Source of the DNA: Octopus sinensis
Lineage: Eukaryota
Length of the DNA stretch: 64,000 nucleotides
Reading direction: 5' to 3'
Assembly (NCBI RefSeq): GCF_006345805.1
Contig: NC_043003.1
Location: 27,218,001-27,282,000, forward strand
Part shown: one piece after another, positions 15,490 through 52,981 of the stretch
Layout: every line of letters begins with the position of its first letter
Position numbering within the stretch: the first letter of the stretch is position 1
Translations under genes and position numbers: made by a program
The notes under the pieces: model-generated
Seen by the model: the letters and a program-made list of their open reading frames with translations, nothing else
Database searches by the model: none
Told to the model about the DNA's origin: nothing

Positions 15490-16614
15490 TTATGGGGAAC
15501 TGAAAAACCGGAAAGGAGATTTTAAAGGAGCTTTATCAAAGACAAATGAAGGAAATGGATTGTATTTAAATAGCAAGCAATCTGGCTCGAATATTTCTTT
15601 CAGTTTTAATTTTATTTCGTCCGGGATATCCTGATAAGCTTCCCTTAAAGCCATCTTTCGATTTTCAGAAAGATTCGCATCAGTATTTACAGAATGTTGA
15701 TGCTTTTGTATTAAAGAAGTCAAAAATTCTTGCTTCGTAATATTTAGCCAATTTTCCGGGGAATAAGGGAAATTTATGTGAATACTTATGAGACCTTTTA
15801 TTTGAAGTTTGCGCCAAGTCTTTTGTGCTGCGTTGTAAGGATCGTAGCAAGGGTTTTTCGAGTTGCTATCACTTGAAAATAAAATATGTGCAGCGTCCGT
15901 CAACTCATCCAAAACACTGGCGCTTTTCGCTTTCTGAATTAAATATTTGTGATTTGATAGACCAATGAAAACCATCATTTTTTCGGCATCGTTCTGAAAG
16001 CTTTCGAGCTTCCCAATAAAATCGTATTTTATCAGACACGGCTTACAATGAGTATACATAGGCATAAAGTGACCATCTGTGTTAAGTCCATTCGTGATTG
16101 TCTTCACGAAATAGGTTACAAATTCGGCAAACGTGACATTATTGTAGCATTTTCTTTGAGGTTGATTGTTTGCGTTTGAAACTTTCCGTAGAATCAACTG
16201 CCAACGACTGCTCCTTGCAAACAACTTGTCGACGAATGCAGATAACAATCGTGAATAGGGTTCACGGACGAAAATTATTTTTTTGTAGTTCTTCAAAATA
16301 TTTTCTATTTGTCTGAACGACATCTGGGAGAATCTTTCATTTGGTAACCCGTGGGCGTCCCCTAGTGTGATTTCGAATGGGTCTTTTAGATTGTGTTTAT
16401 TGTTGCTAAAGAAATACAACAGTCTTTTGAAGAAGGAGCAGCCAACCTTTTCTATGAGACAATTAATGAACTCATGGCGCGTATTGACATATATATGACT
16501 GTGAAAAATGAACTTGTTGTTATATCCGTAGTATTTACTAGTGTCGTTCTGGCATACTGCATAAATGTTTTCTTTCAGCTCTCTTTGACGGTCTGCATTA
16601 TTCTGTTGCATCAC
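15490..16614 (-). CDS. Carbohydrate sulfotransferase catalytic terminal exon B (paralogue of exon A)
   Basis: Open frame of 375 codons after acceptor TTTTTTTTAG|GTG (phase 0). Motifs: CLIEKVGCSFFKR, IFVREPYSRLLSAFVDK, GHFMPMYTHCKPCLIKYDFIGKLE, DCLLFKY. No TM segment in the exon. Confidence 0.93.
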   Translation of the reverse strand: MMQQNNADRQRELKENIYAVCQNDTSKYYGYNNKFIFHSHIYVNTRHEFINCLIEKVGCSFFKRLLYFFSNNKHNLKDPFEITLGDAHGLPNERFSQMSFRQIENILKNYKKIIFVREPYSRLLSAFVDKLFARSSRWQLILRKVSNANNQPQRKCYNNVTFAEFVTYFVKTITNGLNTDGHFMPMYTHCKPCLIKYDFIGKLESFQNDAEKMMVFIGLSNHKYLIQKAKSASVLDELTDAAHILFSSDSNSKNPCYDPYNAAQKTWRKLQIKGLISIHINFPYSPENWLNITKQEFLTSLIQKHQHSVNTDANLSENRKMALREAYQDIPDEIKLKLKEIFEPDCLLFKYNPFPSFVFDKAPLKSPFRFFSSP

Positions 16615-16668
16615 CTAAAAAAAACATATTTTATAATAATAATAATGATGATCTTAAATTTTGGAACA

Positions 16669-16782
16669 GGCCAGTAATTTCGAGGGAAGGGGTTAGCTGA
16701 TTACATCGACCCCAGCGCTCAACTGGTACTTATTTTAGCGACCCCAAAAGGATGAAATCAAAGTCGACTCGTTTGTGAATGC
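16669..16782 (-). mobile_element. SINE family B fragment
   Basis: GTCGACTTTGATTTCATCCTTTTGGGGTCG.TAAAATAAGTACCAGTT central domain. Confidence 0.7.
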
Positions 16783-17015
16783 TGATTATGGTTATGCTTT
16801 TGTATGTGTGTCTCTGTGTATGTGTAAACAAGTTTAAATCTAAGTCAGAATAATAGAATTTTGGCACAGAAAATTGAAAATGTACGGTTATGAAGGTCAT
16901 CCCTATACAGAATAATGAAGCCTGGAGAAAGCCAATTTTAAATTTGGACAACAGACAGGTACTTTCATACAATTCACTGTTATCTAAAATAATTTAAGTT
17001 AACAGCACTGTTAAA

Positions 17016-17209
17016 TATTGTAAATAGATGTACTCCATAAGTTTGAAACACTTTTCTCCATACGACTATTTGATCGATATAGTGGAATACTCGATTCCTC
17101 ACACGTTATTTTTTAACGGGTTGATCGAGCAGAGTATTCAACCACTACGATCAAATAGTCCTATGGCGCAAAGTGTTCCAAGCTTATGGAGTATTTGTAT
17201 CTACAATAT
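17016..17209. repeat. Imperfect palindrome / fold-back element
   Basis: TACTCCATAAGTTTGAAACACTTT...GACTATTTGATCG pairs with CGATCAAATAGTC...AAAGTGTTCCAAGCTTATGGAGTA. Confidence 0.75.
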
Positions 17210-17582
17210 GTTCTGTTATGTTTGCGAAGGATAGTTAACGATTCCCTATAGCACAATTTACAAATACCGATATTTGCATTGTATAAGGGATTCTGACTTA
17301 CGATGGATTAGGATAGGGTATAGGGAACATTTTGGGATTTGAGGTTTTGTACATATGTTGCTAAGGAGGTAAATAATTTAAATTTTCGATTGTCGTTTGT
17401 ACTCTGTTGGATCCATTAATATAAACATCTATATATTTATACTTAGATATTCATCGTCTGAAATTCCCTACTTTTGTTTTCTCTCGTTTTGCATGTATAC
17501 ATATATACAGATTTTGTATCTCATACCCAGACTATTATAGTTAATATATCTAATTTGTTTTTCCGCCTAATTGCTTCTATAT

Positions 17583-17939
17583 CCGTTCAAGTGATGCAAT
17601 TGTGGCATCTTGGGCAAGTGTCTTCTGCTATAGCCCCGGGCCGACCAATGCCTTGTGAGTGGATATGGCAGACGGAAACTGAAAGAAGCCTGTCGTATAT
17701 ATGTATATGTATATGTATATGTATGTGTGTGTTTGTGTCTGTGTTTGTCCCCCTAGCATTGCTTGACAACCGATGCTGGTGTGTTTACGTCCCCGTAACT
17801 TAGCGGTTCGGCAACAGAGACCGATAGAATAAGTACTAGGCTTACAAAGAATAAGTCCTAGGGTTGATTTGCTCGACTAAAGGCGGTGCTCCAGCATGGC
17901 CACAGTCAAATGACTGAAACAACTAAAAGAGTAAAAGAG

Positions 17940-17940
<1 letters not shown>
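17583..17940 (+). mobile_element. SINE family A copy (head degraded)
   Basis: TTGGGCAAGTGTCTTC...AAAGAAGCCTGTCG...CAGCATGGCCACAGTCAAATGACTGAAAC. Confidence 0.85.
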
Positions 17941-17978
<38 letters not shown>

Positions 17979-19543
17979 GAAAATGGATGCGTGTGTTCAA
18001 TCATATAATAATATAAATAATATATAAATATAAATGAATACATACATGCATATATGTACATAAATATATGATAAACCCATTGGGTTATTTAGGAAAACTT
18101 TATCCAAAAACCTGAAAGCGTAGCCTGTATTGTCTCTGTATGGAAAGATAGTTGCTCATCTGCTACTCATTATAAAGTGAAAGAAAATAGAATGCTATGA
18201 TTTCTTAATGACTTTATATATATATTATATATACTTTATGCACTTAATACACACCACTCATATAATACTGATAAAATAAACATTCACTCTTATTTTTCCA
18301 TTTTTTCCATAATCGAAAAAGAAATATCCTCTACATATGATACAACCTTTATTTAAATTGCATTTATCTGCTACGTAAATAAACGTGAATATTTCACGGA
18401 ATTGCACTTATGTGCATGCATTAAGGGGTGGGTGATACAAAAACAAAACTTAGTTCAATTTTAAAATGCACTTTTCACTATCGAGTCCCCACCACCACCA
18501 TCTTGAGTGCTACCATCTCCATCCCCACTACCGCCACCACTACCATCATCATCCCTCTCTCTCCCTCTCTCTCAATCACTCTCTCTCCCATTCTCTCCCT
18601 CTCTCTCTCTCCCTCTCTCTCTCTCTCGCTCTTCACCTTATCCTCTTTTTCGCTCTCCTTTTTCTTCCTCCTCTCTTTCTTTTCAACTAGTAATGTGAAA
18701 GCTTTACAATTTTCTTTTTCCCTCTTTTTTCTCCAATCACGTGAAAGCGTTACCGACGGTCTAAGTAACGCAATGACAAGCAGAATTATCATACGATTAC
18801 GTATGTGTGTGTGTGTGCCATATGCACTTATGCGATCATGTGAGCGTCTATATGTGTGTGGGGAGGGTGTGTGGATGCATGTATATTTTTGTATTTATTC
18901 TAAGAACCTTAAATGTAAATCTTTTAGAATGTTCGATTTAGAAGATAAGAGTCAGTTGCTGTGTTCTGTCTTGGAATACCCCAACATTTTCGTATTTTCA
19001 GGTTTCTTTCATATGAATCACTTATTAGATTGGACAGTCAACACCTAATAAAACAGATCCGGAATTTTTTTCACGTAATTTGACCAGCTCATGTTTTCTG
19101 GATACAACTTGTTTTCATATAGAAAATAAAAGCGATCATTTATTTCAGTTTTGGAATTTGTTCAATATGAATTATTTATAAATGCATGAATGAGTAATTG
19201 CCTTTAATAAGTTACTGAAATTAATCGATTATGTATTTAAATTGATAAAAGGAACTTAATTTCTTTTAAAATGTGTTAAAGTATACGTGCAGAGTCCACT
19301 GGTGGTGTTCTGTCATGGCGACATTGTATTATTTTTGATATTTTAAAAGTGTTCTTTCAGATAGTTTAGTGAGTGGAGGTGTGTGTATGTGTGTATGTCT
19401 ATGCGCGTGAACGCTTATGTGTGTACGTGTGTGTATCTGCATGTGTGTGCGTGTACATATATAATTAGTTTGTAGGTTTGTGAGGATAGGTTAAAAAATG
19501 GAGATACACGTATGTATACATGTATGCATATTCACGTATTCAT

Positions 19544-20704
19544 TTAGACATCGTCAAAGTTAAAATACGTAATGGGGCCTGTTGAGATGCGTTTATCGGA
19601 ATCAAATATGATGTCCGGTTTGAACGGATAATCCCATAATTCACATTCAGTGCTGAATAGTTTTGCGAGATCTTCCAAGTCTTTCTGCGGTACTGAATAA
19701 TACGCTTCCAAATATGAAAATTTCCGTGCTTTATGACAATCTGGTTCACTAGAAGATTTCTTGTTGTATTTCGTTAAAATTGAAAGAAACTGAGTTTTGT
19801 TAAGGGACAATAATTCTTTTTTTGTTATTGTCAAATTAAATTTGTAACTGATAAGTCCTTTGATTTGAAGTTTGCGCCACAAACGCCGCGTGATGTTATG
19901 TATATCGAAGCATGGGTTTTCGTTAAAACGTTTATTATTTTTAACGCTAAATACTATATCGGCAACGTCCTTGAGTTCATCTTTGATACTTCCAGTTTCT
20001 ATCTCATCCAAGGTAGATTGGTATTTTACATGAAGCTCACTGAACAAAGTTGCTGCGTCTGTTTTGAAATTTTCAAGCTTTCCAATGAAATCATATTTCG
20101 CTGAACACGGATTACTCAAGAAGTGTATCGGCATAAAATGACTATCTACGGATTTACCTTCAGATATTTCAGACACAAGAAAACGTACAACGTCAGTAAA
20201 TCTAGTGTCAGTGCCACATTTCTTTGATTTGTCTGGAGCTGAAGGTCTAACTTTGTTAATTATACGCTTAGACAAAAAATCCCAATAGTCGTAACGCGAG
20301 AAAATCTTATCGACGTAACCAGAGAATAAACGCTTGTAAGGATCGCGGACAAATAAAGCGAATTTATATTCTCTTTGAACTTCTTCCAGTTGTTTTGCCG
20401 TTAACTTGTTGGTAGTGTTCAATGGAAGCACGTGGGCATCATATAACGAATAAATAAAGGGGCTGGAAATAGATTTATTACTGCCAATGAAATACAAGAA
20501 ACGCTTTAAAAACGAACAACCGGTTTTAGGGAGGACACACGTGACAAATTTGTACTTCGATATGATGATAGACGATTGCAAATAAGTATTGTTTCTGTAG
20601 CCATTGTAACGGGAGAAATCTTTTGAGCACAGACTCTGAACGTTCTCTTTTATATCGATAGGAGCCGGAGTCGATTCAACTGACACAACGATCGAAGATT
20701 TCGT
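19544..20704 (-). CDS. Carbohydrate sulfotransferase catalytic terminal exon A (Sulfotransfer_2, CHST8-14/HNK-1ST-like)
   Basis: Open frame of 387 codons after acceptor TTTTAATTTTCAG|ACG (phase 0). Motifs: 5'-PSB CVLPKTGCSFLKR, 3'-PB LFVRDPYKRLFSGYVDK, SHFMP..NPCSAKYDFIGKLE, C-terminal ECELWDY. AATAAA at 19144-19139. Confidence 0.93.
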   Translation of the reverse strand, partial: TKSSIVVSVESTPAPIDIKENVQSLCSKDFSRYNGYRNNTYLQSSIIISKYKFVTCVLPKTGCSFLKRFLYFIGSNKSISSPFIYSLYDAHVLPLNTTNKLTAKQLEEVQREYKFALFVRDPYKRLFSGYVDKIFSRYDYWDFLSKRIINKVRPSAPDKSKKCGTDTRFTDVVRFLVSEISEGKSVDSHFMPIHFLSNPCSAKYDFIGKLENFKTDAATLFSELHVKYQSTLDEIETGSIKDELKDVADIVFSVKNNKRFNENPCFDIHNITRRLWRKLQIKGLISYKFNLTITKKELLSLNKTQFLSILTKYNKKSSSEPDCHKARKFSYLEAYYSVPQKDLEDLAKLFSTECELWDYPFKPDIIFDSDKRISTGPITYFNFDDV

Positions 20705-21014
20705 CTGAAAATTAAAAGCAGAAAATATATATATATATATATATATAATATAAGCATATTAATAGATGTTTGATAATGCAAGTACATATACAAATGGTGG
20801 CTCAAAAAACTTTTCATATAATGTGTGTGTCTGTGTGTATGTGCGTGCACGTGTGTGCGTGTGTGCGTGCATGAGTATGTATATATATATACACGCATAT
20901 ATATGTGTGTGTATATATATACATATATATATATATACACACACACTATGTGTGTATATGTGTGTGTGTATGTGCGTGCGTGCATATATCCGATAACGGA
21001 ATACATCAAATTTA

Positions 21015-21851
21015 TTACACTAGCAGAGAATCTTGGATTTGGTCATTCACCCGTTCATCGACACCTACATGCCATCGTAAAAATCTGAAAATTGAGTCAA
21101 TGTGTTCCTCACAAATTTCCCGAGTCTAATCGCTCTCAGAGAGTGAATCTGTGCTCTTCTTTGTTGTCACGTCTCACGAATGAACCTTTTTTGGACAGAA
21201 TAGTGACTGGTGACGGGAAATGAGTTCTCTATAAAAATGTCAAGCACTGGAGACAGTGGGTAGGGAAAGGAGAAACACCGGCATCCCAGGCTAAAGATGG
21301 TCTTCACCCACCTAAGATGTTATCTGTTTGGTGGGATATGAAGAGTTACGTCCACTTTGACCTTTTAAACTCAAACCAAACGGTGACAAAGGAGATCTCT
21401 GTGAGCAGCTTGAGCGGCTTAAGTCAGCGCTAGAAGCAAAACCACTAACTTTGATTTCAAGACGAAGGGTGTTCTTCCATCAGTATAATGCTTAACCACA
21501 TACAGCGCGGATGACATTTCAAAAGCTGAAGCAGTTTGAATGGGAAACGATGCCCCACCCACCATATTCGCCGGACATTGCCCCAACTGATTATTATTTA
21601 TTCTGCAGACTTCAAAACCATTTGGACAGAAAAAAATATGAACTCTGTAGACTAGGTCAGAACATTACTGGAGGAGTATTTTCCGTCGCGGACAAGTGAA
21701 TTTTGGAAGAGGAGCCTTGCAAGTCTACCAGGCAGATGACAGAGCATTGCAGAAAATGAAGGAGTGTATATTTTAGATTAAAAGGAACTTTGTTTATCTT
21801 AATTTTGAAAACGAAGTATAAAAACAGCATTATTTATGGAATGACCCAATA
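21015..21851 (+). mobile_element. Decayed mariner transposon (3' two-thirds plus TIR)
   Basis: VPHKF...FLDRIVTGDGK, WWDMK, PHPPYSPDIAPTDYYLF. Terminal ATTATTTATGGAATGACCCAATA. Confidence 0.88.
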
Positions 21852-21999
21852 CTGTATATATTCATCTGTCTAACTTGCTTATCCATACATTTACTTCTAT
21901 AGCCACACAAGTTTAGATCTTTTGAGTACTACTAAGTGTATTCCAAACGGAGAGTATCTGATTCTCATCTATGAACTATATATGTGTGTGTGTGTATAT

Positions 22000-22038
<39 letters not shown>

Positions 22039-22071
22039 TATGTAAATATGTGGCAATTATTTGGTAGCCAT

Positions 22072-22132
22072 GATAAAACTCCGAGTTTCGGATGCCGAGG
22101 TGGAAATCCACGCCGCCATCTCTCCAGTAATC
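22072..22132 (-). ncRNA. Decayed hammerhead-like motif
   Basis: GATTA-CTGGAGA-long hairpin (GATG..GTGG ATTT CCAC..CATC)-C-GAAA-CTCGGAG-TT-TTATC. The core has an A6G change. Confidence 0.35.
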
Positions 22133-22401
22133 CGGCCATCGGAAAAATGTTATGAAAAATGAGTTATACAAAGGGAAATTACTGGGTGATTGACCGTTAT
22201 TAAGACAAAAGAGCTATTTGAATGACCGCTAAGTGAGGGGAGGGAGTAAAAATAAGGGGGTAAAAAGCTCATAGTATTCGCGTAAGCGCGTATGTTCATA
22301 CCTACACATGCGCACCCGCACACCCACGTGCGTGCGCGAATACTATGAACTTTTTTACTTACTTTTACTTCCTCCCTTCACTTATCGGTCATTTAAATAG
22401 C

Positions 22402-22778
22402 TCTTTTACTTGTTTCAGTCATTTGACTGTGGCCATGCTGGAGCACCGCTTTTTTGTTGAACAAATCGACTCCAGGACTTATTCGTTTGTAAGCCTAGTA
22501 CTTATTCTATCGATATCTTTGACGAACCACTAGTTACGGGGACGCAAATACACCAGCATCGGTTGTCAAGCGATGTTGGGGGGGACAAACACAGATACAC
22601 AAGCATACACACACATATACATATACATTTATATACATATATACGACGGGTTTCTTTCAGTTCCGTCTACCAAATCCACTCACAAGGCTTTGGTCGGCCC
22701 GAGGCTATAGTAGAAGACACTTGGCCAAGGTGCCACGCAGTGGAACTGAACCCGGAACCACACAGCCACTCCTACGCC
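22402..22778 (-). mobile_element. SINE family A copy with a short head deletion
   Basis: Same family; lacks the segment between the A and B boxes. Confidence 0.85.
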
Positions 22779-22789
22779 TATAGTAAGCA

Positions 22790-23502
22790 GGAATTTGACA
22801 AAATTAAGGACATAAGGAAGTTGACAAATTAAGTAAATAGGAATTTCACAAATTAAGTAAATAAGGAGTTTGAGGAATTAAGTATATAACGAATTTGAGA
22901 AATTAAGTAAATAAGGGATTTGAAAAATTAATTGAATAAGGAATTTGACAAATTTAGTAAAGAAGGAATTTGAGAAATCAAGTAGATAAGGAACTTGACA
23001 AATTAAGTAAATACAGAATTTAAGAAATTAAATAAGGTATTTCACAAATTAAGTAAATAAGGAATTTGAGAAATTAAGTACATAAGGAATTTGAGAATTT
23101 AAATAAATAAGGAATTTGAGAAATTAAGTAAATACGGAATTTGACAAAATTAAGGAAATAAGAAATTTGACAAATTAAGTAAAGAGGAAGTTCACAAATT
23201 AAGCAAATAAAGAATTTGACAAATTAAGTTAATAAGGAATTTGACAAAATTAAGAAAATAAGGATGTTGACAAAATTAAGTAAACATAAATTTGACAAAT
23301 TAAGTAAATAATGTATTTGACAAATCAAGTAAATACGGAATTTGACAAATTAAGTAAACAGGAATTTGACAAATCAAGTAAATAGGAAACTGACAAATTA
23401 AGTAAATAAGGAAGTTGATGAATCAAGTTAATAGGGAATTTGGTAAATTAAGTAAATAAGTAATTTGACAAATTGAATAAATAGTAATTTGACAAATTAA
23501 GT
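22790..23502. repeat. 25-bp minisatellite, about 28 copies
   Basis: Consensus GGAATTTGACAAATTAAGTAAATAA. Confidence 0.9.
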
Positions 23503-23519
23503 ACCTTACCGTACCTTAC

Positions 23520-26500
23520 CTTACACCTGTATACTGTCTCCTTAATTTTGCAGTTAGATTCAAGCGAACATAATCTATTGGTTGCATAATCACATTCTTT
23601 ATCTCTAACTCTATTTTTTATATATTCTTTTCCTCCCAGATTATTTATATTCTTATGTTTGCTCCGTATATCTTCTAATTTAAATTCCCTTTTTAATTTT
23701 CATAAATTTTAATATCACATTCCAATATATTATTATTCACAATATCTTTATGATTTTTGTCTGAAGTCTTTCAATATAATGTCTGGCCTGTTCGCATCTA
23801 TCTTTCTGTCAGTTTGAACGGTGAAGTTCCTGAGGTGTGAGATGTGATCATTTTCAAGCACTGGAGATGGTTTGTGTTCCCACCAGTTTTATCATGGGAC
23901 ACGTCTAGGTTTTTGCAAATTACCCAGTGAATATATTGTACTGTTCTATCATGCCTGTTGAGATACTCTATAGGCACAAAAAGACTGCATCTGGAGATAT
24001 GATAAATAGTTTCATTTTGTTGTTGAGATACACGACATGTTGGGCTACTGTCGTGATTTAATATGTTGGCCTGTAGTTCCTTCTAGATAGGAATTGATCT
24101 TGGGCTGCTATGATAAACCCTTCTGTTTCTGATTTTAAGCCAGAAGACACTAACCATTGGTGGGTAAGGGCTTTGTCGACATCGGCATTATTAGCTCTCT
24201 TTTGGGTATTTGCCATTGAGAGGTTTTTCTTGCCATTTATCAGTAAGAATTTCTAAGGCAGCAGTAGTAGCACGGGTTTTAATACTCTTAGCTTTTTCTG
24301 TGCTTGTTGTTTGTAGTACGTCTAATTCTGGGATTTGTCGTATTTGGAATTCCACTTAGATATTCCTTTGCCTGTTGTGTTACTAAGTGGGACGCTTCCT
24401 TGTTTTCATGCTTTAAGACAAGTTTTAACATCCAGTCATCAGAGTTTTTCGGGTAGGTGTTTTAGCCAGCTGTGGCAATCTTCATTGTTAATTCCAGTTG
24501 TAAAAGTCCACGGCCACCCTCTTTTCTTGGCAGGTAAAGTCGTTCTATATCTGCTTTGGGTGGTGCATTCTATGCATTGTCAGCAATTTTCGTATTTTCT
24601 GTAAAGCTTACATATTTCAGTAATTGACCAGTTAATGATATTGAAACTGTATGTTACGACCGGTATGGCTAAAGTATTAATCGCTCTGATCATGTTTCTT
24701 GCATTCAGCTGTCTTGAACATTGCCCTTACCCTGCGATAACATTCTCTTCTGATCGTTTCCCTCGTCATTGAATGTTAGATTCCATCCCCTAAAATACCC
24801 CTAGGTATTTGTAGCTCTCCGCTGGTTCTAACTCCTTTATGACATTCTGCTGGTCATGATTAACGTTGGATGTTATCACTGAATTGTTTAACAATTGCTA
24901 ATAAGCCCTGTAGTTGTTGGTCATTTTTTGCAGAGAGCTTTAAATCATCCATGTAAAAGAGATGATTTATATTTTATCAAACACTAGCAGTATTGCCCGG
25001 CTCGTGCGCTCGTGCGTTCTATGCACGCGCGAATTAAGCTAAACTTGGATGAAGTTCAATCAAAATTCAATTATTTTGGTTTTAGAATCAAGCATTTAAT
25101 GCCCTCTATTTTTGCGCTTATGTGTTCCATTTCCTCAATAGGAAAACGAAGAAGCGTTTCATAAACTTTTGTTGATCAAATAATTGCATTGTTGAATTAT
25201 TCTTTTAGATCAGTATTTCTCAACGGGGATTTCAGGGGATTTCAGGGAGTCGCTGGCGATATATCGTGATGATCAAATATCCGGCCAGTCATCCATGTAA
25301 AAGAGATGATTTATATTTTATCAAACACTAGCAGTATTGCCCGGCTCGTGCGCTCGTGCGTTCTATGCACGCGCGAATTAAGCTAAACTTGGATGAAGTT
25401 CAATCAAAATTCAATTATTTTGGTTTTAAAATCAAGCATTTAATGCCCTCTATTTTTGCGCTTATGTGTTCCATTTCCTCAATAGGAAAACGAAGAAGCG
25501 TTTCACAAATTTTTGTTGATCAAATAATTGCATTGTTGAATTATTCTTTTAGATCAGTATTTCTCAACGGGGATTTCAGGGGGTTTCAGGGAATCGCTGG
25601 CGATATATCGTGATGATCAAATATCCGGCCAGCTAAAATTTGGTTAAAGTGATTCAAACTGCAGACTCAACGCAAAATGGTCACATTTAATTCAAAGCGT
25701 TAAAAATGTTATGAAAACAATTGGTATGTGTTCACAAAGTCCAAACGATTAATACGAAAAAACCCTCCAGGCTACATCCCGAAAATTAATTTTATTGCCG
25801 AATTTCTACAATGTTTACGGCGATTCGTTTTTATATCTTGATTTTTTTTATTTTTCATGCAATTTACGCATGCTTGCACGCGTGGTGAACACAGTTCACG
25901 TCAAACAGCTTACTGAGTAAAGTTCCCTATTCAATGCATGGGATAAGGCCTAAACAAACACATTATCGATTTTTGCACTTGCGAGATGAATTTCGGAACA
26001 GAAATAGCGCAGTTCAATATTCATTCGCCTAAACTTTAAGTGACCCATTTTTGGTGGTTCTACGATTTGTTGGCTAGGAGGAGATGTGCCGGGAAGTTAA
26101 ACACACAGACACACACACAGATATACACACAAACACACAAGTTGAGTTTTATATATATAGATTTTGTAGCCATATTGAACATCATCGAACAATTTCGAGA
26201 GAGTTATTAAGGTTAGACAAAAGAAGAGTAGTGATAGAGAGTCACCCTGGAAAATGCCACATGAAATTCTTACATTTCCAACATTAAGAGATTCATTGTC
26301 ACTGTTCAAAGTCAGTGTGGTTCTCCATGACCTCGCACTTACAGACAAGACGTTTCGCAGAGTAGGCGTTATTTTATACATTTCCAAACATTTCTTAATC
26401 CAGCTATATGTTAGACTATCAAAAACTTATTTTATAGTCTACCCAGGCTTTCAATAAGCTTTTGTGACGTTAGGGACAATCTTCCAAGATCATCTTATTG

Positions 26501-27490: not shown

Positions 27491-27499
27491 TAACTATCA

Positions 27500-28503: not shown

Positions 28504-28637
28504 CATACATACATACACACCTACACATACATACATACATACACACATGCATACTTACGTGCATATCTTTTACTTGTTTCAGTCGTTGGACTATAGACAT
28601 GCTGGGGCACCTCACTTTGTATATGTGTGTATGTATG

Positions 28638-28863
<226 letters not shown>

Positions 28864-31142: not shown

Positions 31143-31335
31143 AATAATCCTTTCTACTATAGGTACAAGGGCTGGAATTTGTGGGTTGGGGGACTAGTCG
31201 ATTACATCGACCTCAGTGTTTCACTGGTTACTTAATTTGAAAGGCAAAGTCGACCTCGGCTAAATTTGAACTCAGAACGTAGCGACGGGCGAAATAACGC
31301 TAAGCATTTCGACCGGCGTGCTAGCGATTCTCGCC
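31143..31335 (-). mobile_element. tRNA-derived SINE family B copy
   Basis: GGCGAGAATCGCTAGCACGCCGG...TCTGAGTTCAAATT (B box)...GCCGAGGTCGACTTTGCCTTTCA...TAGTAGAAAGGATTATTAT tail. Confidence 0.85.
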
Positions 31336-33329: not shown

Positions 33330-34541
33330 CGTAAGACTCGAAAAGTACTAAAAAACACACATAATTTCCACATAAACAGTGACGTAGACCGCCTCTGCCT
33401 AAAACGAAATCAAGGTGGCAGAGGCTTAACATCGATCCAAAATGCCTTTGAATGTGGCATCATATCCCTTCAACAACATCTTTTAACCACCAAGTGTCGA
33501 AGTGCATCCCTTGACTAAGTTTGAATACATCATAAGACTCGGAAGGCAGCTCCATAAGCAACCATCTTTGTCTGATAAACTAGAATACAAGCCCAAAGAA
33601 GTCGTACGACTCTACCGTATCACTAGATGAAAAGATAAGCCTATATTGGCAGAAGACTATGCATGGCTATGTTAGTAGAAGCTCCGTGATGATAGTAACA
33701 TCGAACATCAAAGCAGTTTATCATGGACCAATAGCTGGATTATTACCTCTCACTTTGAAGGGTATGCGTCTGCAATCCAGGAACAGGAAATATCAACCAA
33801 GTACCTGATGCGCAAGAGGGATAGAGATGCAGGAAAAGCAGTAAAATGTAACAACCAATGCAGACTTTGTGGAGTTCACACTGAAGATAAGCATTTGTCC
33901 GAAGATGTCATCACAATATTATCTACTGATGAGACATGATGTTGTAGCTAGGACACTCTATAATGAAATCCGTCGGAAGGATAATCCCGAGGACATAGAA
34001 ATGAGAACCGACAATATGGTAGAGGCAATGACCACACATGATATAAAAGAATACTGCTAGAATGTTAACATAAAGCTGAAGATCAGTGAAAAAGAGAACA
34101 CCTATGCTGAACTATAGAGGAATCTCCAGTTACTCTATCCAGATTACAAGTTCAGGTTTATTGAGGCCCTGGGATATGTAACACACTGCCTAAATACTAA
34201 TCTTGAGGAAAACCAGAAATGAGAAAGCTAATTCAAAGACTACAGATCCAATCCATCACTGGAACTGTAAAAATCTGTAAAACCTTCCAGAAGTTTATCA
34301 TTTAAATATATATGAGCATGTTTACATATGCAATTATGTGTATGAGAATACATACATAAAGCATACAAATCTGCACATACATACATACATACATGCATTC
34401 ATACATACATATATACATACATACATACATACATACATACATACATACATGCATTCATACATACATACATACATACATACATACATACATACATACATAC
34501 ATACATACATACATACATGCATTCATACATACATACATACA

Positions 34542-37620: not shown

Positions 37621-38010
37621 AGGTGGTGAGCTGGCAGAAGCGTTAGCACGCCGGGCAAAATGCTTAGCGGTATTTCGTCTTCCGTTACGTTCTGAGTTCA
37701 AATTCCGCCGAGGTCGACTTTGCCTTTCATCTTTTCGGGGTCGATTAAATAAGTACCAGTTACGCACTGGGGTCGATATAATCGACTTAATCCATTTGTC
37801 CTCTCTGTGTTTAGCCCCTTGTGGGTTATAAACAAATAGGTATTTCCTCTGCCACTACGTTCTGAGTTCAAATTCCGCGGAGATCAACTTTGCCTTTCCT
37901 CCTTTCGGGGTCAATTAATTAAGTACTAGCTGCGTACAGCGGTCGATCTAATCGACTGGTCCCCTCCACCAAAGTTTCGGGCCTTGTATCTAGAGTAGAA
38001 AAGATTATTA
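37621..38010 (+). mobile_element. SINE family B dimer
   Basis: A full monomer, then a second unit starting at GGTATTTC (37839) with a different tail and (ATT)n. Confidence 0.85.
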
Positions 38011-38116: not shown

Positions 38117-38118
<2 letters not shown>

Positions 38119-43830: not shown

Positions 43831-43861
43831 TATTATTGTTGTTGTTGTTGTTGTTATCATT

Positions 43862-44053: not shown

Positions 44054-44305
44054 ACAAGTTACTCCTACAAAATATGTTGACTGCCTTTTTCTTTCATTTG
44101 TCCACTCACTCTACCGTTCCTGTCCCATTAAATTTCCTTCACAAGGTATAGGCCAATGCCAGTCTACATAGAAAATTATATGTATCGAACATGCCATGCA
44201 GTTGGATCGAAACCGGGACCCCGTGGTTGCGAAGCAAACATTTTAACGTAATAGCCCATACTGCGCTTGCACAATATAACTACACATGTGTGTGTGCGTG
44301 CGTGC

Positions 44306-44350
<45 letters not shown>

Positions 44351-44539
44351 AAGGAAAAAAACACAGTAACTTCAAAGTTTCGGCCTGCTCGCAGTCATCA
44401 AACTATCATCCGAAACTTCGAAGTCACTGTCTACCATTTTCTTTACAAAATTTCATAAACATGTACTCTACTAAAAAGTATTGAGGAAATCCTTTTATTT
44501 CATTATGTATGTATGCATGTATGTATGTATGTATGTATG

Positions 44540-44571
<32 letters not shown>

Positions 44572-44650
44572 AATGTATGTATGAATAAAAAGGTATGTAT
44601 GTATTATATGTGTGTGTGTATGTATGTATGCATGCATGTTTGTGTGTATG

Positions 44651-45109
44651 TCATTATTCAGTTTATTTCACGGTTTCTTGCCAATAAAGAAAGAACCGGT
44701 TTCTAATCTAGATGCAAGGCTCCTTCACTGAAATTTCAACATCAACAACAGGGTATTATGTGCGTATGTATGTATGTATGTATGTATGTATGTATGTATG
44801 TATGTATGTATGTATGTATGTGTGTGTGTATGTATGTACGCACGTATGTATGTATGTAAGTACGTATGTATGTATGTATGTATGTATGTATGTATGTATG
44901 TATGTATGTATGTATGTATACGTGCAAATTTGTATGTTTTGTTTTATTTTCATGCATATAGTTGCATTCTACACATGTTCATATATACTTAAATGATAAA
45001 CTTCCGGCAAGTTTTACAGATTTTTACAGTTCCAGTGACGTCTTGAATCTATAATCTTCGAATCAGCTTTGTCCTTTCTGGTTTTGAGAAGCCTAATTTT
45101 TCAAGATTG
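44651..45109 (-). mobile_element. 5'-truncated R4-type family 2 copy flanked by (CATA)n at both ends
   Basis: NLEKLGFSKPERTKLIRRL.IQDVTGTVKICKT plus 3' UTR. (TATG)n at 45110-45177 and below 44650. Confidence 0.82.
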
Positions 45110-45329
45110 GTATGTATGTATGTATGTATGTATGTATGTATGTATGTATGTATGTATGTATGTATGTATGTATGTATAGCTTGACATAAAAACAATAAGC
45201 AATATACACTAGCAGAAACAAATTTTAGGTTGAAAACTTTTAATGTGGGAATAAAAAGCCCAATATGGGTATTGTACTCTTGTATTGTAATCAATGCGTT
45301 TAACGAAATCAATATATTGATTTCAAATT

Positions 45330-45510
45330 TTGGCACAAGACCAGGAATTTTAGAGGAGGGTGCAAGTCGATTACATCGACCTCAGTGTTCAACTGGTACT
45401 TATTTCATCGACCCCGAAAGGATAAAAGGCGAAGTCGAACTTGACAGAATTTGAACTCAGCACGTATAGACGGACAAAAAACGCTGCTAAGTATTTTGTA
45501 CGGCGTGTCT
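45330..45510 (-). mobile_element. SINE family B copy
   Basis: B box CTGAGTTCAAATTC and the central GTCGAT..AATAAGTACCAG domain. Confidence 0.75.
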
Positions 45511-45712
45511 GCGAGGTAGACACATTAATTAATCCACAGACGCACACGCACAAACACACCGGGCCGCACACATATAATAACACGCACTTATGCACACACA
45601 CACACACACACATACACACATACACTCACTCACTCTTTTTCTCTCTTTCTCCCTCCCGTTCTCACATTCACCCTCACATCCATACAACTATATAAATATA
45701 CTGGGTTGTTGT

Positions 45713-45831
45713 ATAATTAACGACCGTTTTTATCATTATCATTATTATAATTATTATTATTATTATTATTATTTTATTATTATTATTATAAATTCTGTTG
45801 TAAATTAAATTATAAAACGGTCGTTAATTAT
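45713..45831. repeat. Perfect 18-bp inverted repeats around an (ATT)n core
   Basis: ATAATTAACGACCGTTTT / AAAACGGTCGTTAATTAT. Confidence 0.8.
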
Positions 45832-46109
45832 GCACCTACCCAATAGAAAGAAAAAAAACTAAGAAACAAGTAGACAGGCCTGAAAATGATTGACCTGGAG
45901 AGGAGAGAGAGCATATTATTGAAGAGGACACGAATGGCAACGACAGGGCTTTGACAAACATAACTGATTGGTTAACCGAAGAATTAATCAAACAATCGAT
46001 TTGTTAACTGGTATCACCTCAGCCTTTGATTTATCGTCCCATTTGTATAACAGCTGTAGCCCTATTTGTGGAACGCGTGTAGTGAGTTTGAAGGTAACCT
46101 GCAACAAAA

Positions 46110-46157
46110 TGCCGCCCAATTGATTATCCGTCAGCCATCTGTCTCTGATGACCAGAA

Positions 46158-46227
<70 letters not shown>

Positions 46228-46345
46228 GTGTCTTTGTGTCTATGTCTGTTCCGCACCACCGCTCGACAACCGGTGTTGGTGTGTTTACGTACCCGTAACT
46301 TTGCGGTTCGACAAAAGGAACTGACAGAATAAGTACTAGGCTGTA
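46110..46345 (+). mobile_element. SINE family A-like 3' part with an internal (TG)n
   Basis: GACAACCGGTGTTGGTGTGTTTACG..CCCGTAACTT.GCGGTTCG...AATAAGTACTAGGC. Confidence 0.7.
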
Positions 46346-46564
46346 AACAAAAAAAAACAAGTACTGGGGAAAGGGGAGAATCGTGCGATTAAAATTCTTC
46401 AGCGCGATGAAATAAGTAAAACACAAGTAAAAGGTGCGCGTGTGTGTGTGCGTGCATGCGCGGCAAAAAACACACACCATATGTATACACACACACACAC
46501 ACACGCACATATATATATATACACATATATATATGATATATATGGATATTTATCTATATATATG

Positions 46565-46648
<84 letters not shown>

Positions 46649-46650
46649 AG

Positions 46651-47038
46651 ATAGGGTCATCCCACAAATAATTTTTATACTTCTTTTATTTTCAAAATTA
46701 AGATAAACAAGGTTGAAAAGGTTGCAAGAAGCAACGAAAATTTTAGGAAAATAAAATAAAGAAATAAGTGAAAATTTTACCGGTGAGTGTGTTAAAGCAC
46801 AAAAAAAAAATGACTCTCCCCAGACACAACAGAATATGCTTCAACACACGAACTCACATAAAGAATCTTGCAAACCAAATCCAAAAACGAAAGATAAACA
46901 AAGTTCTCGTCTAATCTAAAATATACTCTTCTTCTGTTTGTCTGGGGAGAGTCATTCACCTCTTGTGCCTTATTATTTAACATACCGGTTTCCACTCATT
47001 TACTTATAAAATTTTGTTGCGTCTTGCAACCTTTTCAA
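46651..47038. mobile_element. Mariner TIR remnant followed by a ~330-bp fold-back element
   Basis: 46651-46710 resembles the 21780-21850 mariner end. TTGAAAAGGTTGCAAGA / TCTTGCAACCTTTTCAA and ATGACTCTCCCCAGACA / TGTCTGGGGAGAGTCAT are inverted pairs. Confidence 0.65.
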
Positions 47039-47132
47039 TAACCGTTGACTCTGTCTGTTCTCCGAGTTGCGTTCTTTTTCTTTTGTTGTTGTTTGTGCGC
47101 ATGGGTGTGGGTCAGTGTGCCTGCGCATACAC

Positions 47133-47163
<31 letters not shown>

Positions 47164-47439
47164 TGTATGTATGTATGTATGTGTGTATGCATATATGTGT
47201 GTGTATGCATATATATATGCTTGCGTGCGTGTACGTTTGTATGTATGTATTCTACATATTCATGTGTTTGTGTGTTTTTATGCGTGCGTGTTTCGTTGTT
47301 TGTGCATGTTTGAGTGTGTCTGTGTATGGGTTTTGTGACCATGTATGTGTGTATGTGTGCTTGTCTGTTTATATTACCTATGTACCTATCTATCTGTAAA
47401 TCTATCTGTTTACATTCATTTCCATTTACCAACATATAT

Positions 47440-47703
<264 letters not shown>

Positions 47704-47803
47704 AGGTAATCCAGACATGAACAAAGAGAAAACACAACAACGCAAGGACGTGGAACAAGTATTGTGTTATTGGACGCTCAGGAAAGGAAAGAAAGAAGGA
47801 AGA

Positions 47804-47836
47804 TTTAATGTTTTGAGCAGAGCTCTTTGTTAGAAA
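47804..47836 (-). ncRNA. Heavily decayed hammerhead-like motif
   Basis: TTT-CTAACAA-AGAG CTCTG CTC-AAAA-CA-TT-AAA; G-to-A changes would restore CTGACGA...GAAACGTT. Confidence 0.3.
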
Positions 47837-48456
47837 CATAGAAAAGGAAAAGGTCCAAGGATGGGAAGACGGAGAAAGAATATCGTCAACGATACACACG
47901 CGGTCACATATTGAAATGACCGGAAGGGAATGGGTGAAGAAAAAGTTCTTTCAAAGACATGAGAGTGCAAGAGAAGGAGGTATGTGTGTATATGTGTGGG
48001 TATATGCGTGCGCGCAGCTGTATGTGTGTGTGTGTGGTTGTGGCTGTTTATCTATGTGTGTGGTTGGGCGTAGTATCGTTTAAGGCCATAGGAAGAATTT
48101 ATAGTAAGAATTTTGGTAGGAGTGGCTGCCTGTTGTGTGTCTTCCTACACATGTGCATAGGAGAATGGTCAGTAGAAGGTACTGGTAGCTTGAAGTATGT
48201 GTGTGTATGTGCGTGTATGTGTATGCAGTGTATGTGTGTTTTGTTTGTAGTGTGTGTGTATGTGTGTTTTGTTTGTAGTGTGTGTGTATGTATGCATGTA
48301 TGTGTTCGTGTGTATATGTGTGTATCCGAAGGAATTGTGTGTGGGGGGGGGGGAGTAACTGTACTTTATTCTGTGTATGTGTGCGTGTGTGCTTGTATAT
48401 GTGTGTACATGTATGTATAAGTGTGTACGTGTATATATGAGTGTGTGCTGTATGTA

Positions 48457-51012
48457 CAGGCATAATTTGGCTTAAGTCGTTTCCATTTGAGTCATTCTCG
48501 ATTATACGTCGGTTTTCAAAAATAACATGGAAAAATATAAATCAAGTCAAGTCATTTTACACATCTTTATGTCTGTCCGCCTCAAATATTGGAATCGTAA
48601 AATCACTGGAAAACCATTAGAAGTACATAAAATCATATTACTGTACAATAAATAAGAATAACAGCATATAAAAATCAAATTAAAATAAGTAAAGTAAATG
48701 TTAAGATACACACCATACAGCAGTGTAGCTTAGTGAACGAAATCATGAAATCAACTGTGTTGTCTTATTTATCGGTCTTTCGGAGCTCATATTGCACTAT
48801 AGTTCCAATATCTACCGTTAGGCGTTGTTGTCACTCGCGATTCCCGCGATTGTTTTGAATTCAGATTCGTTTACGTCTGTTTATCGGCTATTTTCTCATT
48901 TTCATTCATTGTGACTTAATTTTTCACCTCCATGGCTCCTAAGAAAATACGTAGTGAAAGTGCTAAGCGTCATGCTATAATGCTGGAACATAAACTGATA
49001 AAACGCCATGAAAAAGGTGAAAAAGTGGTTGCAATTGCATGATTTGGGGGATGAGTCGAACAACTGTATCGACGATTGTACATAACAAGAATATTTTAGC
49101 ACACATCAAATCTGAAGCCTCGGGGATGAAGAACACTGTCATCAGTAAGAAAAGGGGCAAAATCTTTGAAGAAATTAAACGTCTTCTTTCTCTTTGGGTT
49201 GTTAGGTTGAATCGTCAGTGTGCTACTATTTGTCAGAAAATCACTCAAGAGAAAGTGTTATCTGTTTGAGGACCTAAAAAAATATCCAGAGGAGAAAGGT
49301 GTAGAGTTCAAGGCAATCCAAGGATGATTCCTGAGATTTAAGAGCGATGAAGTCATCACTATATTAAGAAGCAAGGTGAAAGTACATCAGATGATGAACA
49401 AGCAGCAGCGGAATTTCCTAATGCATTAAAGAAAATCATCGAAGAAACCGGGTTTCTTCCCGAACAGGTTTTTAATGTAGACGAAACTGGATTGTATGGA
49501 AAAAATTGCCAGACCGTTCGTTCATTTCCAAAGAGGAGAAAACTATTCCAGGCTACAAGGTCTCAAAAGAACGAGTGAACATTATGTTGGGAGGTGATTG
49601 TTCAAGAGATTTAAAGATAAAGCAATTGCTTGTGTATCATGTACACAACCCCCGGCCCTGAAGAACATACTCCCCTGTTATATTGATGGCTAATTCAAAA
49701 GCGTGGGTTACTGTTGTTGTTTTTGAAAATTGGTTCTTCAATCATTTTATTTCAGCAGTAGAAAGGTACTGTTAGGAGAAGGTGATTCCATTTAATTCTT
49801 AGATAATGTTCCTGATCACCCGCAAAACATCGTAGATTTTGACTCCAACGGTACCGTCGTATGCCCCACCCCCCTAACACCACGTCTCTTCTGCTGCCAA
49901 TGGATCAGGGAATAATTGCTATCTTCAAGCATTACTATATGAAGCGTACGCTGCGGCAAGCAATAGCTACAACTGATCTTGAGGAGTCCATCACACTTAG
50001 TGACTTTTGGAAGAGAAACGATATCTACAAGGCTGTACAGAACATAGCAGCGGCATAGAATGATGTGCAGGGCACGGCTATGAACAGTGTATGGAAGAAG
50101 ATATGCCCGCAATTCGTGAATGATTTTAAGGGGTTTGATAATGTTGCAATCACAAAACGTTGGTGACTATGAGCAAAGAACTGGAAATGGATTTGGAGGA
50201 GGAGGATTTCACAGATTTATTTGAAAAAGACAAGTATCCTCTGACGAACGAGGATTTTATAGAGCTTCACGAGCAGCAAAATAAAGAAGAGGAAATGGAA
50301 CCTGAGCCACGTCATTTTACCATTAAGAAAATTCAGTAAGTATTTGCCTACATCAAAAAAGATCTTTCTATGGTTGAGGATATGGATCCAAATGCTCAAC
50401 GCTTTTCCAAGATTATGGGAGCTTTTCACGAAGCTCTTGTTCCTTATAATGTAATCATTGTGGAAAAGAAGACAGTTCAAGGAACTCTGAACCGGTTTTT
50501 TAAGCGCATCGAACAAGAACAGCCAGAGTCAGCTGTTGATGTTGACGAGCTACAACCATCTACATCCGCGACTTAAACCACCAAATTGTATGTACGTATT
50601 GGTAAATTTCAAATAATTTAGTTTCTTTACTATTGCAAAATAATAATAATTACTGAATTTGTTTTTTAAGCTTAAAATGGTTTTATTTTATCATGTCGTA
50701 CTGCAAACCGCATTCATAAATAAAGCGTCCGCAATGTACGGTAAACACCGCCAAATTATGTTAATAATTTTAGATTACATTTTTTAATTGCATTGTATTA
50801 AAAAATAAAAATTATTTGTTTGTAAGCTTAAAATAGGTTTTTATTAACCATGAATTATTGAAAATGCATTCATAAATAAAGTACAGAACTGGGAATGGTT
50901 ATTATCGGTTTAGCCTAAAGTCAAGTAAATTCAGCCTAGTCTAGCCTAGAGACAAGTTAATTCTAGTTGTGTCTCCTGGAACCAATTAACGATGTAGGGT
51001 GAGGTATGCCTG
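48457..51012 (+). mobile_element. Decayed full-length pogo/Tigger transposon
   Basis: TA|CAGGCATA...TATGCCTG|TA ends. CENP-B-type HTH, then EQVFNVDETGLY and PPNTTSLLLPMDQGII (DDE_1). Confidence 0.9.
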
Positions 51013-51730
51013 TATACACACACACACAGCTAAATCCGATTGAAAAGGTACTGAACTGACGGCCATTGTGGACTGTAAGCTTTTACTGTACAGCATATAC
51101 TTGTGTCTGTCTATGTATTTTCTTTCTTTTCTTTCTTTCTTATCCCCTGACGATGTTAATATAAACGAAAGCATTTGAGATTAGGTGTTTTATTTCATCC
51201 TATGGTAAACAATTTGATTGTGGATGTATGTGTGTGTGTGCAAGGAGTAGAGGATAGGGAGTAACTCGTTTTTAACTTTATCGACTGGAGTAACTCATTT
51301 TTAACACTTTTACTTGAAAGATTAACCATGAAAATATAGGTAAACGTGTTCTTTGTTTTGGATTATCTTGGTTAGTTAAGAGGTTATGACCATTTGATGT
51401 TGGGCCAAGTTAAAAAGTGGCAAAATATTGATGCTTTCTCATTCTGTTATTTTACCATATTCCACTCCGATGATTCTTTGGAACTTTTTGTATATCATAG
51501 GAAACCTTTATCCAAGACAAATAACACTGGTTTCGTTTCTGTTGCAATTAGTGGTGAATACTGGTGTACATTCACTTTAAGCGGTATACAATGGCCAAGT
51601 GTTGTCCCAGTGATGTTGGTAACTAGTGTGGCATTGTATTTATAAAAATGCGGAGGTTGCAGTTATTCATCCATACGTTCAGGTAAAGTGTGGTTATTAA
51701 TCTAGTCGGAAATTTCTCTAATTCATACTC

Positions 51731-51769
51731 TCTGCGATCGATTTCAGCGTCGGAGCATCATCAGATATC
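51731..51769 (-). ncRNA. Minimal hammerhead-like motif with a canonical core
   Basis: CTGATGA-TGC TCCGAC GCT-GAAA-TCGA-TC: palindromic loop III and AUC triplet. Stem I is poorly paired. Confidence 0.55.
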
Positions 51770-52899
51770 GTATTCTTGGATCAGTTTGCAAGTTTTGTGT
51801 CTATATGCAGGTCGTTGAACAAATTTCTAAGTTGAGTTTATTTTAAAGTATGATTACGATACTTCGGAATATTAACTTAATCTTTAGAAATTGATTTTTA
51901 AAATTTAATTTAAGTTCTTTATTCTAGTTATCACTATACTATAGGACTGTGTGGGCTGATTTGTTAAGTGCGTCGGAAAAAATGTCTTACTGCTTCTTTT
52001 CCGTCTCTATACATTCAGAGTTCCAATTCTTTCGATTGTAAATTGATGGAGCCAATAAAACCGAAGAAATAAAGTAGACATCATCGATTATCCCCAGTTC
52101 TTTGGGTTTCAAGCCTTGTGCCAATCTGAGAAGCATTACTTACATCCATAGCTCTCGTTGATGATTTGATCATCAAAACGTGTTATTTTTGATGAATAAT
52201 ACTAGATTAAGATTCGAACGAAAAACCGTCATATCAAAATTAAGTGTAATAAACGCTCTTACCGACTACATCGTTCACTATCAGACACTGTAGTTTAGCA
52301 GAAGAGAGAATAAGCCGTTGATAAGATCGCGAGAGGAGACGAAAGAAGTCTGACGAGCTCTAAATGATTGATTGATTGATCAAACGATTAATCAAACAAT
52401 CGATTGATTAAATGGTTAAATGATCAACTAGTTCACTAATAGTAATAAAAGAAGTGAAATAAAACCGGTGAATGCATTTCTTATTGTTATAATGACTTTC
52501 CAAAGATAAAAACCAAATCTCCTTCAACATACGATTTCACATCGAGAATATTGCAAAACAGATACAAAGCTTAAATATACAATTAAGATATTTGAGATAT
52601 TTGACGTTTCCGTTTCGTCCAGCAAATCGTGTGGAGTTTAGCTACTATGCAAATAAGCCCTGCTCTAGAAGTTGATTAATTATAATTAGTGAACTGAAAT
52701 AGAACCAGTGCGTGTGTTTCTCATTAGCATAAGGACCCTTCCAAGGTGTAACACGTTGTCTATATCGGAGGGGGGAAATAAACAGACTATCGAGCAGACG
52801 CGACCGTCATGTTTGGAATGCTTTTGATAAGAGGTTAACAGGATCAAAGCTGATTTAGATGACACCTTACAAAAATGGTAACAAGAACAACATACTTAC

Positions 52900-52981
52900 T
52901 CGTAATGTAAAGTGTGGCCAATACACAAGCGGTTAATCCAATTAAAGTCACTTTTTTGTATCGATGAAGTCTGAAAAACAT
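52900..52981 (-). CDS. Sulfotransferase exon 1 (coding part): start codon, basic cytoplasmic tail and type II signal-anchor
   Basis: Minus strand reads AAAAA-ATG TTT TTC AGA CTT CAT... = MFFRLHRYKKVTLIGLTACVLATLYIT + A. There is an in-frame TAG upstream and a GTAAGT donor at 52899-52894 (phase 1). Basic residues followed by about 17 hydrophobic residues is typical of Golgi enzymes. Not in the ORF track. Confidence 0.75.

Follow-up and report, generated by a model that had tools for sequence, protein, structure and literature searches.

The calcitonin/CGRP gene is a known example of alternative last exons, and Drosophila lola and mod(mdg4) combine a constant 5′ part with variable 3′ exons. Among vertebrate carbohydrate sulfotransferases, each of the paralogs CHST8-14 is a separate gene with its own membrane anchor. 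A closer case is the Drosophila gene pipe. Its common part is said to encode the stem and an anchor of type II, a whole catalytic domain is reportedly supplied by each variable 3′ exon, and the isoforms are reported to be functionally distinct. Ten pipe isoforms are produced from one promoter with a common first exon that carries the translation start, and each isoform has a sulfotransferase domain (PMC3291829). Here, we analyzed a sulfotransferase locus of Octopus sinensis located in a 64,000-nt stretch of contig NC_043003.1 (positions 27,218,001 to 27,282,000 of the forward strand), referred to below as the window. Similarly to pipe, the locus has a common 5′ exon with the start codon and a predicted anchor, followed by alternative 3′ exons, each with a complete sulfotransferase domain and its own stop codon.

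Our analysis indicates that the locus is probably one gene, LOC115214151, in which a shared anchor is joined to either of two catalytic 3′-terminal exons. The initial annotation of this DNA had proposed a cassette of this kind, with a constant anchor and a variable catalytic domain chosen by the use of alternative last exons. The proposal is supported by the predicted RefSeq models of two species and by the logic of the sequence.

Organization of the Locus

All coordinates without further specification are positions in the window, and the sulfotransferase gene lies on its minus strand. The first coding exon, E1 (52981-52900), is 82 nt long, starts with ATG, ends in phase 1 and has a GTAAGT donor. 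It encodes a K/R-rich cytoplasmic tail and, after it, a hydrophobic signal anchor of 17 residues (MFFRLHRYKK-VTLIGLTACVLATLYIT); four K or R residues are present among the first 10 residues, and the mean hydropathy of the anchor is 2.0 over 17 residues. Exon E3 (31851-31817) is a 35-nt microexon with a cttcag acceptor and a GTGAGT donor, which leads from phase 1 to phase 0 and encodes the stem sequence KFANTKRPSEE. The donor of E3 is the branch point of both splice paths. One of them leads to terminal exon A (20704-19544), which has a phase-0 acceptor (ttttcag) and 386 codons followed by the stop codon TAA. The other leads to terminal exon B (16614-15490), which also has a phase-0 acceptor (ttttttag) and consists of 374 codons and the stop codon TAA. 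The spliced product of E1+E3+A has 425 amino acids and that of E1+E3+B has 413 amino acids. The introns measure 21048 nt between E1 and E3, 11112 nt between E3 and A, and 15202 nt between E3 and B. Every coordinate, phase and intron size given in the initial annotation, as well as both product lengths, was reproduced on the minus strand. The two catalytic terminal exons, described there as intact and 2.9 kb apart, are complete open reading frames (ORFs) separated by 2929 nt. The acceptors were found at the homologous positions that had been reported, 18 residues before the shared KEN..C motif in A and 13 residues before it in B.

A tblastn search of the window revealed neither a second copy of the E1+E3 peptide exon nor a third copy of the catalytic domain. 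The statement that the locus has only one exon with an ATG and a transmembrane segment is in line with this search, as no second copy of E1 was present in the window. The accompanying statement that there is only one small exon has to be corrected, because the 75-nt exon E2 (39904-39830, minus strand) was overlooked. This optional cassette exon, found by tblastn with 100% identity, is in phase 1 at both ends (tttcag/GGGAG at the acceptor and ACAG/gtgagt at the donor) and adds 25 residues to the stem: REKTFKNFTDPHSWRLGFDLPGILT. Of the O. sinensis RefSeq isoforms, X1 and X2 contain it and X3 skips it; the O. vulgaris model, whose N-terminus corresponds to E1, contains it as well. The orthologous position in O. 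bimaculoides is an assembly gap (17202-19440 of the locus sequence designated L001).

The window and the O. bimaculoides locus are collinear, and all acceptors and donors are conserved. The ortholog of E1 is located at L001 10001-10085 and the ortholog of E3 at L001 25584-25618, with its splice sites kept. Synteny and additional catalytic exons in other cephalopods had been suggested as a further check of the cassette; in O. bimaculoides the order is the same, and no third catalytic copy was found within 10 kb downstream.

The alternative-last-exon model is already present in public annotation for two octopus species. In the case of O. sinensis, LOC115214151 has three RefSeq isoforms: X1 (XP_029639085.1, 450 amino acids) is composed of E1+E2+E3+A, X2 (XP_029639086.1, 438 amino acids) of E1+E2+E3+B, and X3 (XP_036360556.1, 413 amino acids) of E1+E3+B. 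The last of these, named “carbohydrate sulfotransferase 11 isoform X3”, is letter-for-letter the 413-residue product derived from the window. An exact look-up of this product returned no gene on record, and the 425-residue product of E1+E3+A is not on record as such. In the case of O. bimaculoides, the shared N-terminus of LOC106880878 is followed by A in X1 (426 amino acids) and by B in X2 (414 amino acids). The two isoforms have an identical N-terminus of 41 amino acids and then diverge, and both gene ranges begin at one L001 base. The exact spliced proteins were present only in NCBI and UniRef, and in none of the assembled read sets. We found no paper that names these octopus loci or accessions.

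Catalytic Domains A and B

The domains encoded by exons A and B show 36% identity over 356 residues (E = 2e-82), which agrees with the earlier estimate by eye that they are well under half identical. Both match the Pfam family Sulfotransfer_2 (PF03567), A with 2.6e-32 and 113 bits, and B with 1e-40 and 141 bits, the curated cut-off being 22 bits. A family alignment was made with 11 cephalopod, bivalve and fish sequences, including fish CHST14, and all 23 of its invariant columns are kept in both A and B. The motifs PKTGCS, FVRDPYKRLFS and DSHF of domain A correspond to EKVGCS, FVREPYSRLLS and DGHF in domain B, and the K, R, R and H of these motifs are invariant across the 11 aligned sequences. 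We take the roles of these residues to be those established for the family: K-x-G-C-S/T for the 5′-phosphosulfate, R-x-P-x-x-R-L-x-S for the 3′-phosphate, and the conserved His.

The source records name the domains CHST8/9/11-like, and their best vertebrate matches are CHST14. On the basis of these features, the products are predicted to be type II carbohydrate sulfotransferases of the Golgi type, dependent on 3′-phosphoadenosine 5′-phosphosulfate (PAPS) and belonging to the CHST8-14-like branch of Sulfotransfer_2; their location would presumably be the Golgi. The type II topology would depend on E1 being joined to one of the two domains, as the RefSeq models predict. The AlphaFold model of domain A had a predicted local distance difference test score of 84.6 and a predicted template modelling score of 0.86. 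A fold search with this model gave the PAPS sulfotransferases SULT1C2, SULT1A1 and NDST1 as the top matches in the PDB, all of them weak and not significant (E of at least 0.29, template modelling scores of 0.2-0.3). A sequence search found no relative in the PDB.

A different start of domain A is used in the O. vulgaris protein CAI9725445.1. In this model, E3 is joined to an internal AG at 20503 (minus strand, tttttaaag/CGT) inside exon A. The internal acceptor drops 67 residues, including the PKTGCS motif, and its use probably reflects either non-productive splicing or an error of annotation.

Age of the Duplication

Relatives of both domains were found on one contig, ctg122418l (404,718 bp), of the ENA set ERZ21867824. 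It contains an A-like ORF at about 184.7-185.8 kb and a B-like ORF at about 210.8-211.9 kb. They are located on the same strand, A first as in Octopus, 25 kb apart, and each of them follows acceptor-like sequence. A search of the 10 kb upstream of each ORF revealed no anchor exon. In a neighbour-joining tree, the A-like sequences grouped with octopus A, and the B-like sequences with B of octopus and Argonauta, each clade having 99% bootstrap support; a scallop sequence fell outside both clades. The shared order of A and B and the two clades therefore indicate that the duplication and this order are older than the divergence of Octopus from the relative represented by ctg122418l. In another lineage, a 2-kb transcript assembled from run SRR8281694 links an N-terminus that bears an anchor with an A-like domain. 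When the A-path protein was used as a query, no product from Argonauta was returned.

Probable Dependence of Exon B on the Shared 5′ Exons

Exon B encodes no signal anchor, and an in-frame acceptor TAG is present directly upstream of it. It begins with the codons GTG ATG in the window; the corresponding codons are GTG GTG CGA in O. bimaculoides, and a third Octopus species has GTG ACG CAA. Since they differ among the three species, B has no conserved start codon. The gap between A and B (16615-19543) was scanned for an ATG combined with a hydrophobic stretch and an in-phase GT donor. The scan gave a single match, 18792-18637, within a GA-rich repeat. It was rejected as a second anchor exon, because in O. 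bimaculoides its ATG is changed to ACA, a stop codon and a 100-nt insertion are present, and the donor is gone. The loss of this lone match bears out the earlier observation that the gap contains no convincing transmembrane exon. It is also consistent, together with the lack of a conserved ATG, with the claim that B has no first exon of its own in the gap.

Two first exons given to B in other annotations were also considered. The first exon in the older O. bimaculoides annotation (MNDCAEDDDQV, L001 46767-46811) encodes no anchor and lies in a 4.5-kb insertion that is absent from the window, and it was rejected as a conserved feature. The first exon of the Argonauta B model (MSNGYLFNRDQ) likewise encodes no anchor; the window contains no homolog of it, and it is uninformative. 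An independent tandem gene would be expected to have its own ATG, anchor and first exon. In the case of B these were not found as conserved features, and a candidate for such an exon is an ORF in intron 2 that is described below. The absence of an anchor, of a conserved start and of a conserved first exon in the A-B gap supports the view that B would need the upstream exons.

Several findings weigh against one gene with two alternative ends. The RefSeq XP_ records are predicted models. Among the public assembled contigs, octopus A and B were found only in unspliced form, with the intron upstream of the acceptor, and these contigs contained no B-like transcript of any species, including when the distant B-like ORF was used as a query. 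The annotation of O. vulgaris, whose locus is 97-99% identical to the window, gives only an A-type product, which loses the PAPS 5′-phosphosulfate motif through the internal acceptor at 20503. Exon B is intact in this species (47193-48314 of the locus sequence L008, OX597820.1; 100% protein identity), and no annotated product covers it. Other annotations provide B with a small separate first exon (A0A0L8FVG6 in O. bimaculoides and GAB1598410.1 in Argonauta). B is present in Argonauta, and no A exon was found there within 13 kb upstream of it. Finally, the ORF in intron 2 is conserved and has a hydrophobic stretch, and it may be an alternative anchor exon.

These findings could be explained if A and B were separate tandem genes, with B having its own promoter and a first exon that is either the intron-2 ORF or lies outside the window; the RefSeq B isoforms would then be read-through products or annotation chimeras. 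The separate short first exons of the older and independent annotations fit this explanation, but they have no anchor and are not conserved, and one of them is located in a species-specific insertion. The A-B gap yielded a single candidate, which O. bimaculoides has lost. The intron-2 ORF (30656-30534, minus strand) has 41 codons, a hydrophobic stretch (MRSKLGKSVEEIRCLPELGIGLIVIILYLLFSNM...) and a weak phase-0 GT after codon 34. It is identical to the O. bimaculoides sequence at 33 of 34 residues, and the six nucleotide differences (five synonymous, one nonsynonymous) speak for a separate first exon. However, its donor (GTTACT) is poor, no gene model or RefSeq isoform uses it, and no homolog was found in the fetched Argonauta or ENA loci. 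The ORF may have arisen by chance, or it may be an alternative first exon that is missing from the annotations; we treat the latter as a minority possibility. The 25-kb spacing of the A-like and B-like ORFs in ctg122418l leaves room for a first exon of B, and no E1-B product is annotated in O. vulgaris; on the other side, the NCBI predicted models of two species give the same join of E1/E3 to B. Overall, we consider separate tandem genes unlikely.

Sequence Divergence among Octopus Species

The rates of divergence were compared between O. sinensis and O. bimaculoides, and the P values refer to the comparison with introns. The aligned introns diverge by 7.2%. The synonymous sites of A and B diverge by 7-8%, so the introns are a fair neutral yardstick. 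In the case of B, the nonsynonymous sites diverge by 3.1%, with a ratio of nonsynonymous to synonymous divergence (dN/dS) of 0.42, which is slower than introns (P 5e-7). The ratio was 0.20-0.24 in comparisons with the third Octopus species, giving a range of 0.20-0.42 over the three species. These values indicate that B is under clear purifying selection and functional.

A different pattern was obtained for A and the shared 5′ exons. The nonsynonymous sites of A diverge by 11.3%, faster than introns (P 3e-5), and its dN/dS of 1.45 is not significantly different from 1 when judged by its own synonymous sites (p = 0.16). The overall nucleotide divergence of A (9.9%) is higher than that of introns, and its dN/dS against the third Octopus species is 0.47-0.49. 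The replacements are scattered over the domain, with the catalytic motifs left unchanged. At all sites, E1 diverges by 22% (P 2e-5) and E3 by 23% (P 0.003), both faster than introns. The nonsynonymous sites of E1 and E3 together diverge by 26%, again faster than introns (P 3e-8), with a dN/dS of 2.6. About half of the 39-40 residues of the shared anchor and stem differ, E1 has a 3-nt indel, and the flanks are well conserved. These rates give the impression that A and the shared anchor are being driven to change. The initial annotation had concluded from the uninterrupted frames that both domains are under selection. This holds for B, with its purifying selection; in the case of A the frame is kept, but the amino acid sequence changes at or above the neutral rate.

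The nonsynonymous divergence of the anchor/stem (26%) and of A (11%), compared with 7% in introns, is the reason to consider positive selection on these parts. The fast divergence of the anchor and A may reflect positive selection or a conversion event. We tentatively suggest, as a possible though not the favored interpretation, an old asymmetric two-headed gene with a conserved B and with A and the anchor/stem under recurrent positive selection in Octopus, the sulfated glycan taking part in antagonistic or species-specific recognition. Such a gene would have persisted from a time before Octopus and the relative represented by ctg122418l diverged, with a single promoter and anchor for the two heads, and its structure would couple the recognition function to the conserved activity of B.

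Another interpretation, that only one end works because A is decaying or has become a neofunctionalised non-enzyme, leaving effectively a single-product gene, would agree with the dN/dS of A between O. sinensis and O. bimaculoides, its nucleotide divergence above that of introns, and the absence of an Argonauta A product in our search and of an A exon near Argonauta B, but it is very improbable, as A is free of stop codons and indels throughout its 386 codons in the three Octopus species compared (the neighboring non-coding DNA has 2-15 gap openings/kb), shows a dN/dS below one half against the third species, retains all invariant family residues, has an A-like counterpart transcribed with its own anchor in another lineage and is the isoform reported by every annotation, while relaxed constraint alone cannot yield a rate above neutral.

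Proposed Mechanism and Polyadenylation Signals

If LOC115214151 is one gene with two alternative ends, as we prefer, a single promoter upstream of E1 would drive all products. Translation would start in E1, which would also encode the signal anchor and, ahead of it, a short basic tail on the cytoplasmic side. The stem would be formed by E3 with the optional E2, and would be short or long depending on the use of E2. Domain A would result from splicing of the E3 donor to the proximal acceptor at 20704, and its transcript would be cleaved and polyadenylated a few hundred nucleotides past 19544, after a conserved AATAAA. To obtain domain B, the A acceptor would have to be skipped, the A poly(A) site read through, and E3 joined to the distal acceptor at 16614. 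We infer that a regulated choice between the two junctions and the two groups of poly(A) signals would replace one entire enzyme head by the other while the anchor stays constant. The glycan acceptors that A and B sulfate presumably differ. The two exons would have arisen when the terminal exon was duplicated in tandem together with its acceptor.

The candidate signals were selected by consensus. The AATAAA at 19144-19139 (minus strand), located +400 nt from the stop codon of A, is conserved in O. bimaculoides. An ATTAAA at +336 and another AATAAA at +645 after A are not conserved there. Downstream of B, three candidate hexamers are present on the minus strand: ATTAAA at 14808-14803, AATAAA at 14765-14760 and ATTAAA at 14725-14720 (+682, +725 and +765 from the stop codon of B, respectively). 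All three are conserved in O. bimaculoides. At the other end of the gene, a (GAA)32 microsatellite (53006-53101, minus strand) lies in the presumed 5′ untranslated region or promoter-proximal sequence, with its end 24 nt ahead of the start codon; it is also found in O. bimaculoides.

Repeats and Other Features of the Window

A 184-nt repeat occurs in 2.7 tandem copies at 55076-55571. Its fragments are located at 16700-16768, 31196-31296, 37669-37957, 45364-45482, 54536-54628 and 56203-56312, one of them 86-154 nt upstream of the exon B acceptor. The repeat is probably a short interspersed nuclear element; tRNA and Rfam scans of the window gave no matches, including for this repeat. The possibility that E2 is an exonised repeat was examined and rejected: its peptide has a weak likeness to the local 184-nt repeat, and blastn gave no support at the DNA level.

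Intron 2 contains two further repeats. The first is a 25-nt minisatellite (AGGAATTTGACAAATTAAGTAAATA) with about 29 copies at 22789-23503; at the corresponding O. bimaculoides site (L001 ~34147-34304) it spans only about 160 nt. The second is a 344-nt unit present as a tandem duplicate with 98% identity at 24945-25632. The end of the window (60000-64000) has a G+C content of 0.49-0.52, a strongly negative GC skew and several plus-strand ORFs of 150-240 codons, which are possibly remains of mobile elements. A Pfam search with four ORFs at 60.1-62.7 kb gave no match.

Comparison with Known Systems

The gene models of this locus are public and its design has a classic precedent, so the novelty is low to moderate. 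New here are the unequal rates of the two heads, the fast divergence of the anchor they share, the evidence on how old the pair is, and the gaps noted in the annotations of O. vulgaris and Argonauta and in the earlier O. bimaculoides set. From the point of view of annotation, exon B is intact but unannotated in O. vulgaris, and the first exons of B in the older O. bimaculoides and Argonauta models are anchorless and, where tested, not conserved. Cephalopods make unusual, highly sulfated chondroitin-type glycans. A head-switching gene would be a reasonable place to look for tissue-specific sulfation.

The octopus locus resembles the vertebrate CHST8-14 genes (the HNK-1 sulfotransferase family) in the PF03567 domain, the predicted type II layout, the one large terminal catalytic exon and the motifs that resemble PAPS-binding ones. 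In comparison with fish CHST14, the mollusc domains have an extra segment of about 100 residues. With calcitonin/CGRP, lola and mod(mdg4) it shares one donor with competing acceptors, each end having a stop codon and a poly(A) signal, here a candidate one. It differs from them in that a whole paralogous enzyme domain would be exchanged, not an unrelated tail or a DNA-binding module.

As in UGT1A and the clustered protocadherins, tandem-duplicated variable exons are combined with constant exons. The polarity is opposite: in those clusters a separate promoter precedes every variable first exon and the choice is one of promoters, whereas the octopus gene would have a single shared 5′ end, a choice made by splicing and polyadenylation, and only two variable units. 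The description of the locus in the initial annotation as a mirror image of the UGT1 and protocadherin clusters is a fair analogy, but Drosophila pipe is a closer precedent and has already been described (PMC3291829). The octopus gene has two variable exons, compared with ten in pipe, and the use of its ends is predicted, whereas in pipe it has been proven experimentally. Its domains are CHST8-14-like according to source names and best matches, not HS2ST-like, and the likeness is one of architecture only. Because of this assignment, the octopus gene appears to be a case of independent origin and not an ortholog of pipe. If this is true, the pipe design would have arisen a second time, independently, in another sulfotransferase branch and in another phylum, and tandem duplication of a terminal exon would be a repeatable route to glycan-modifying diversity that needs no new promoters.

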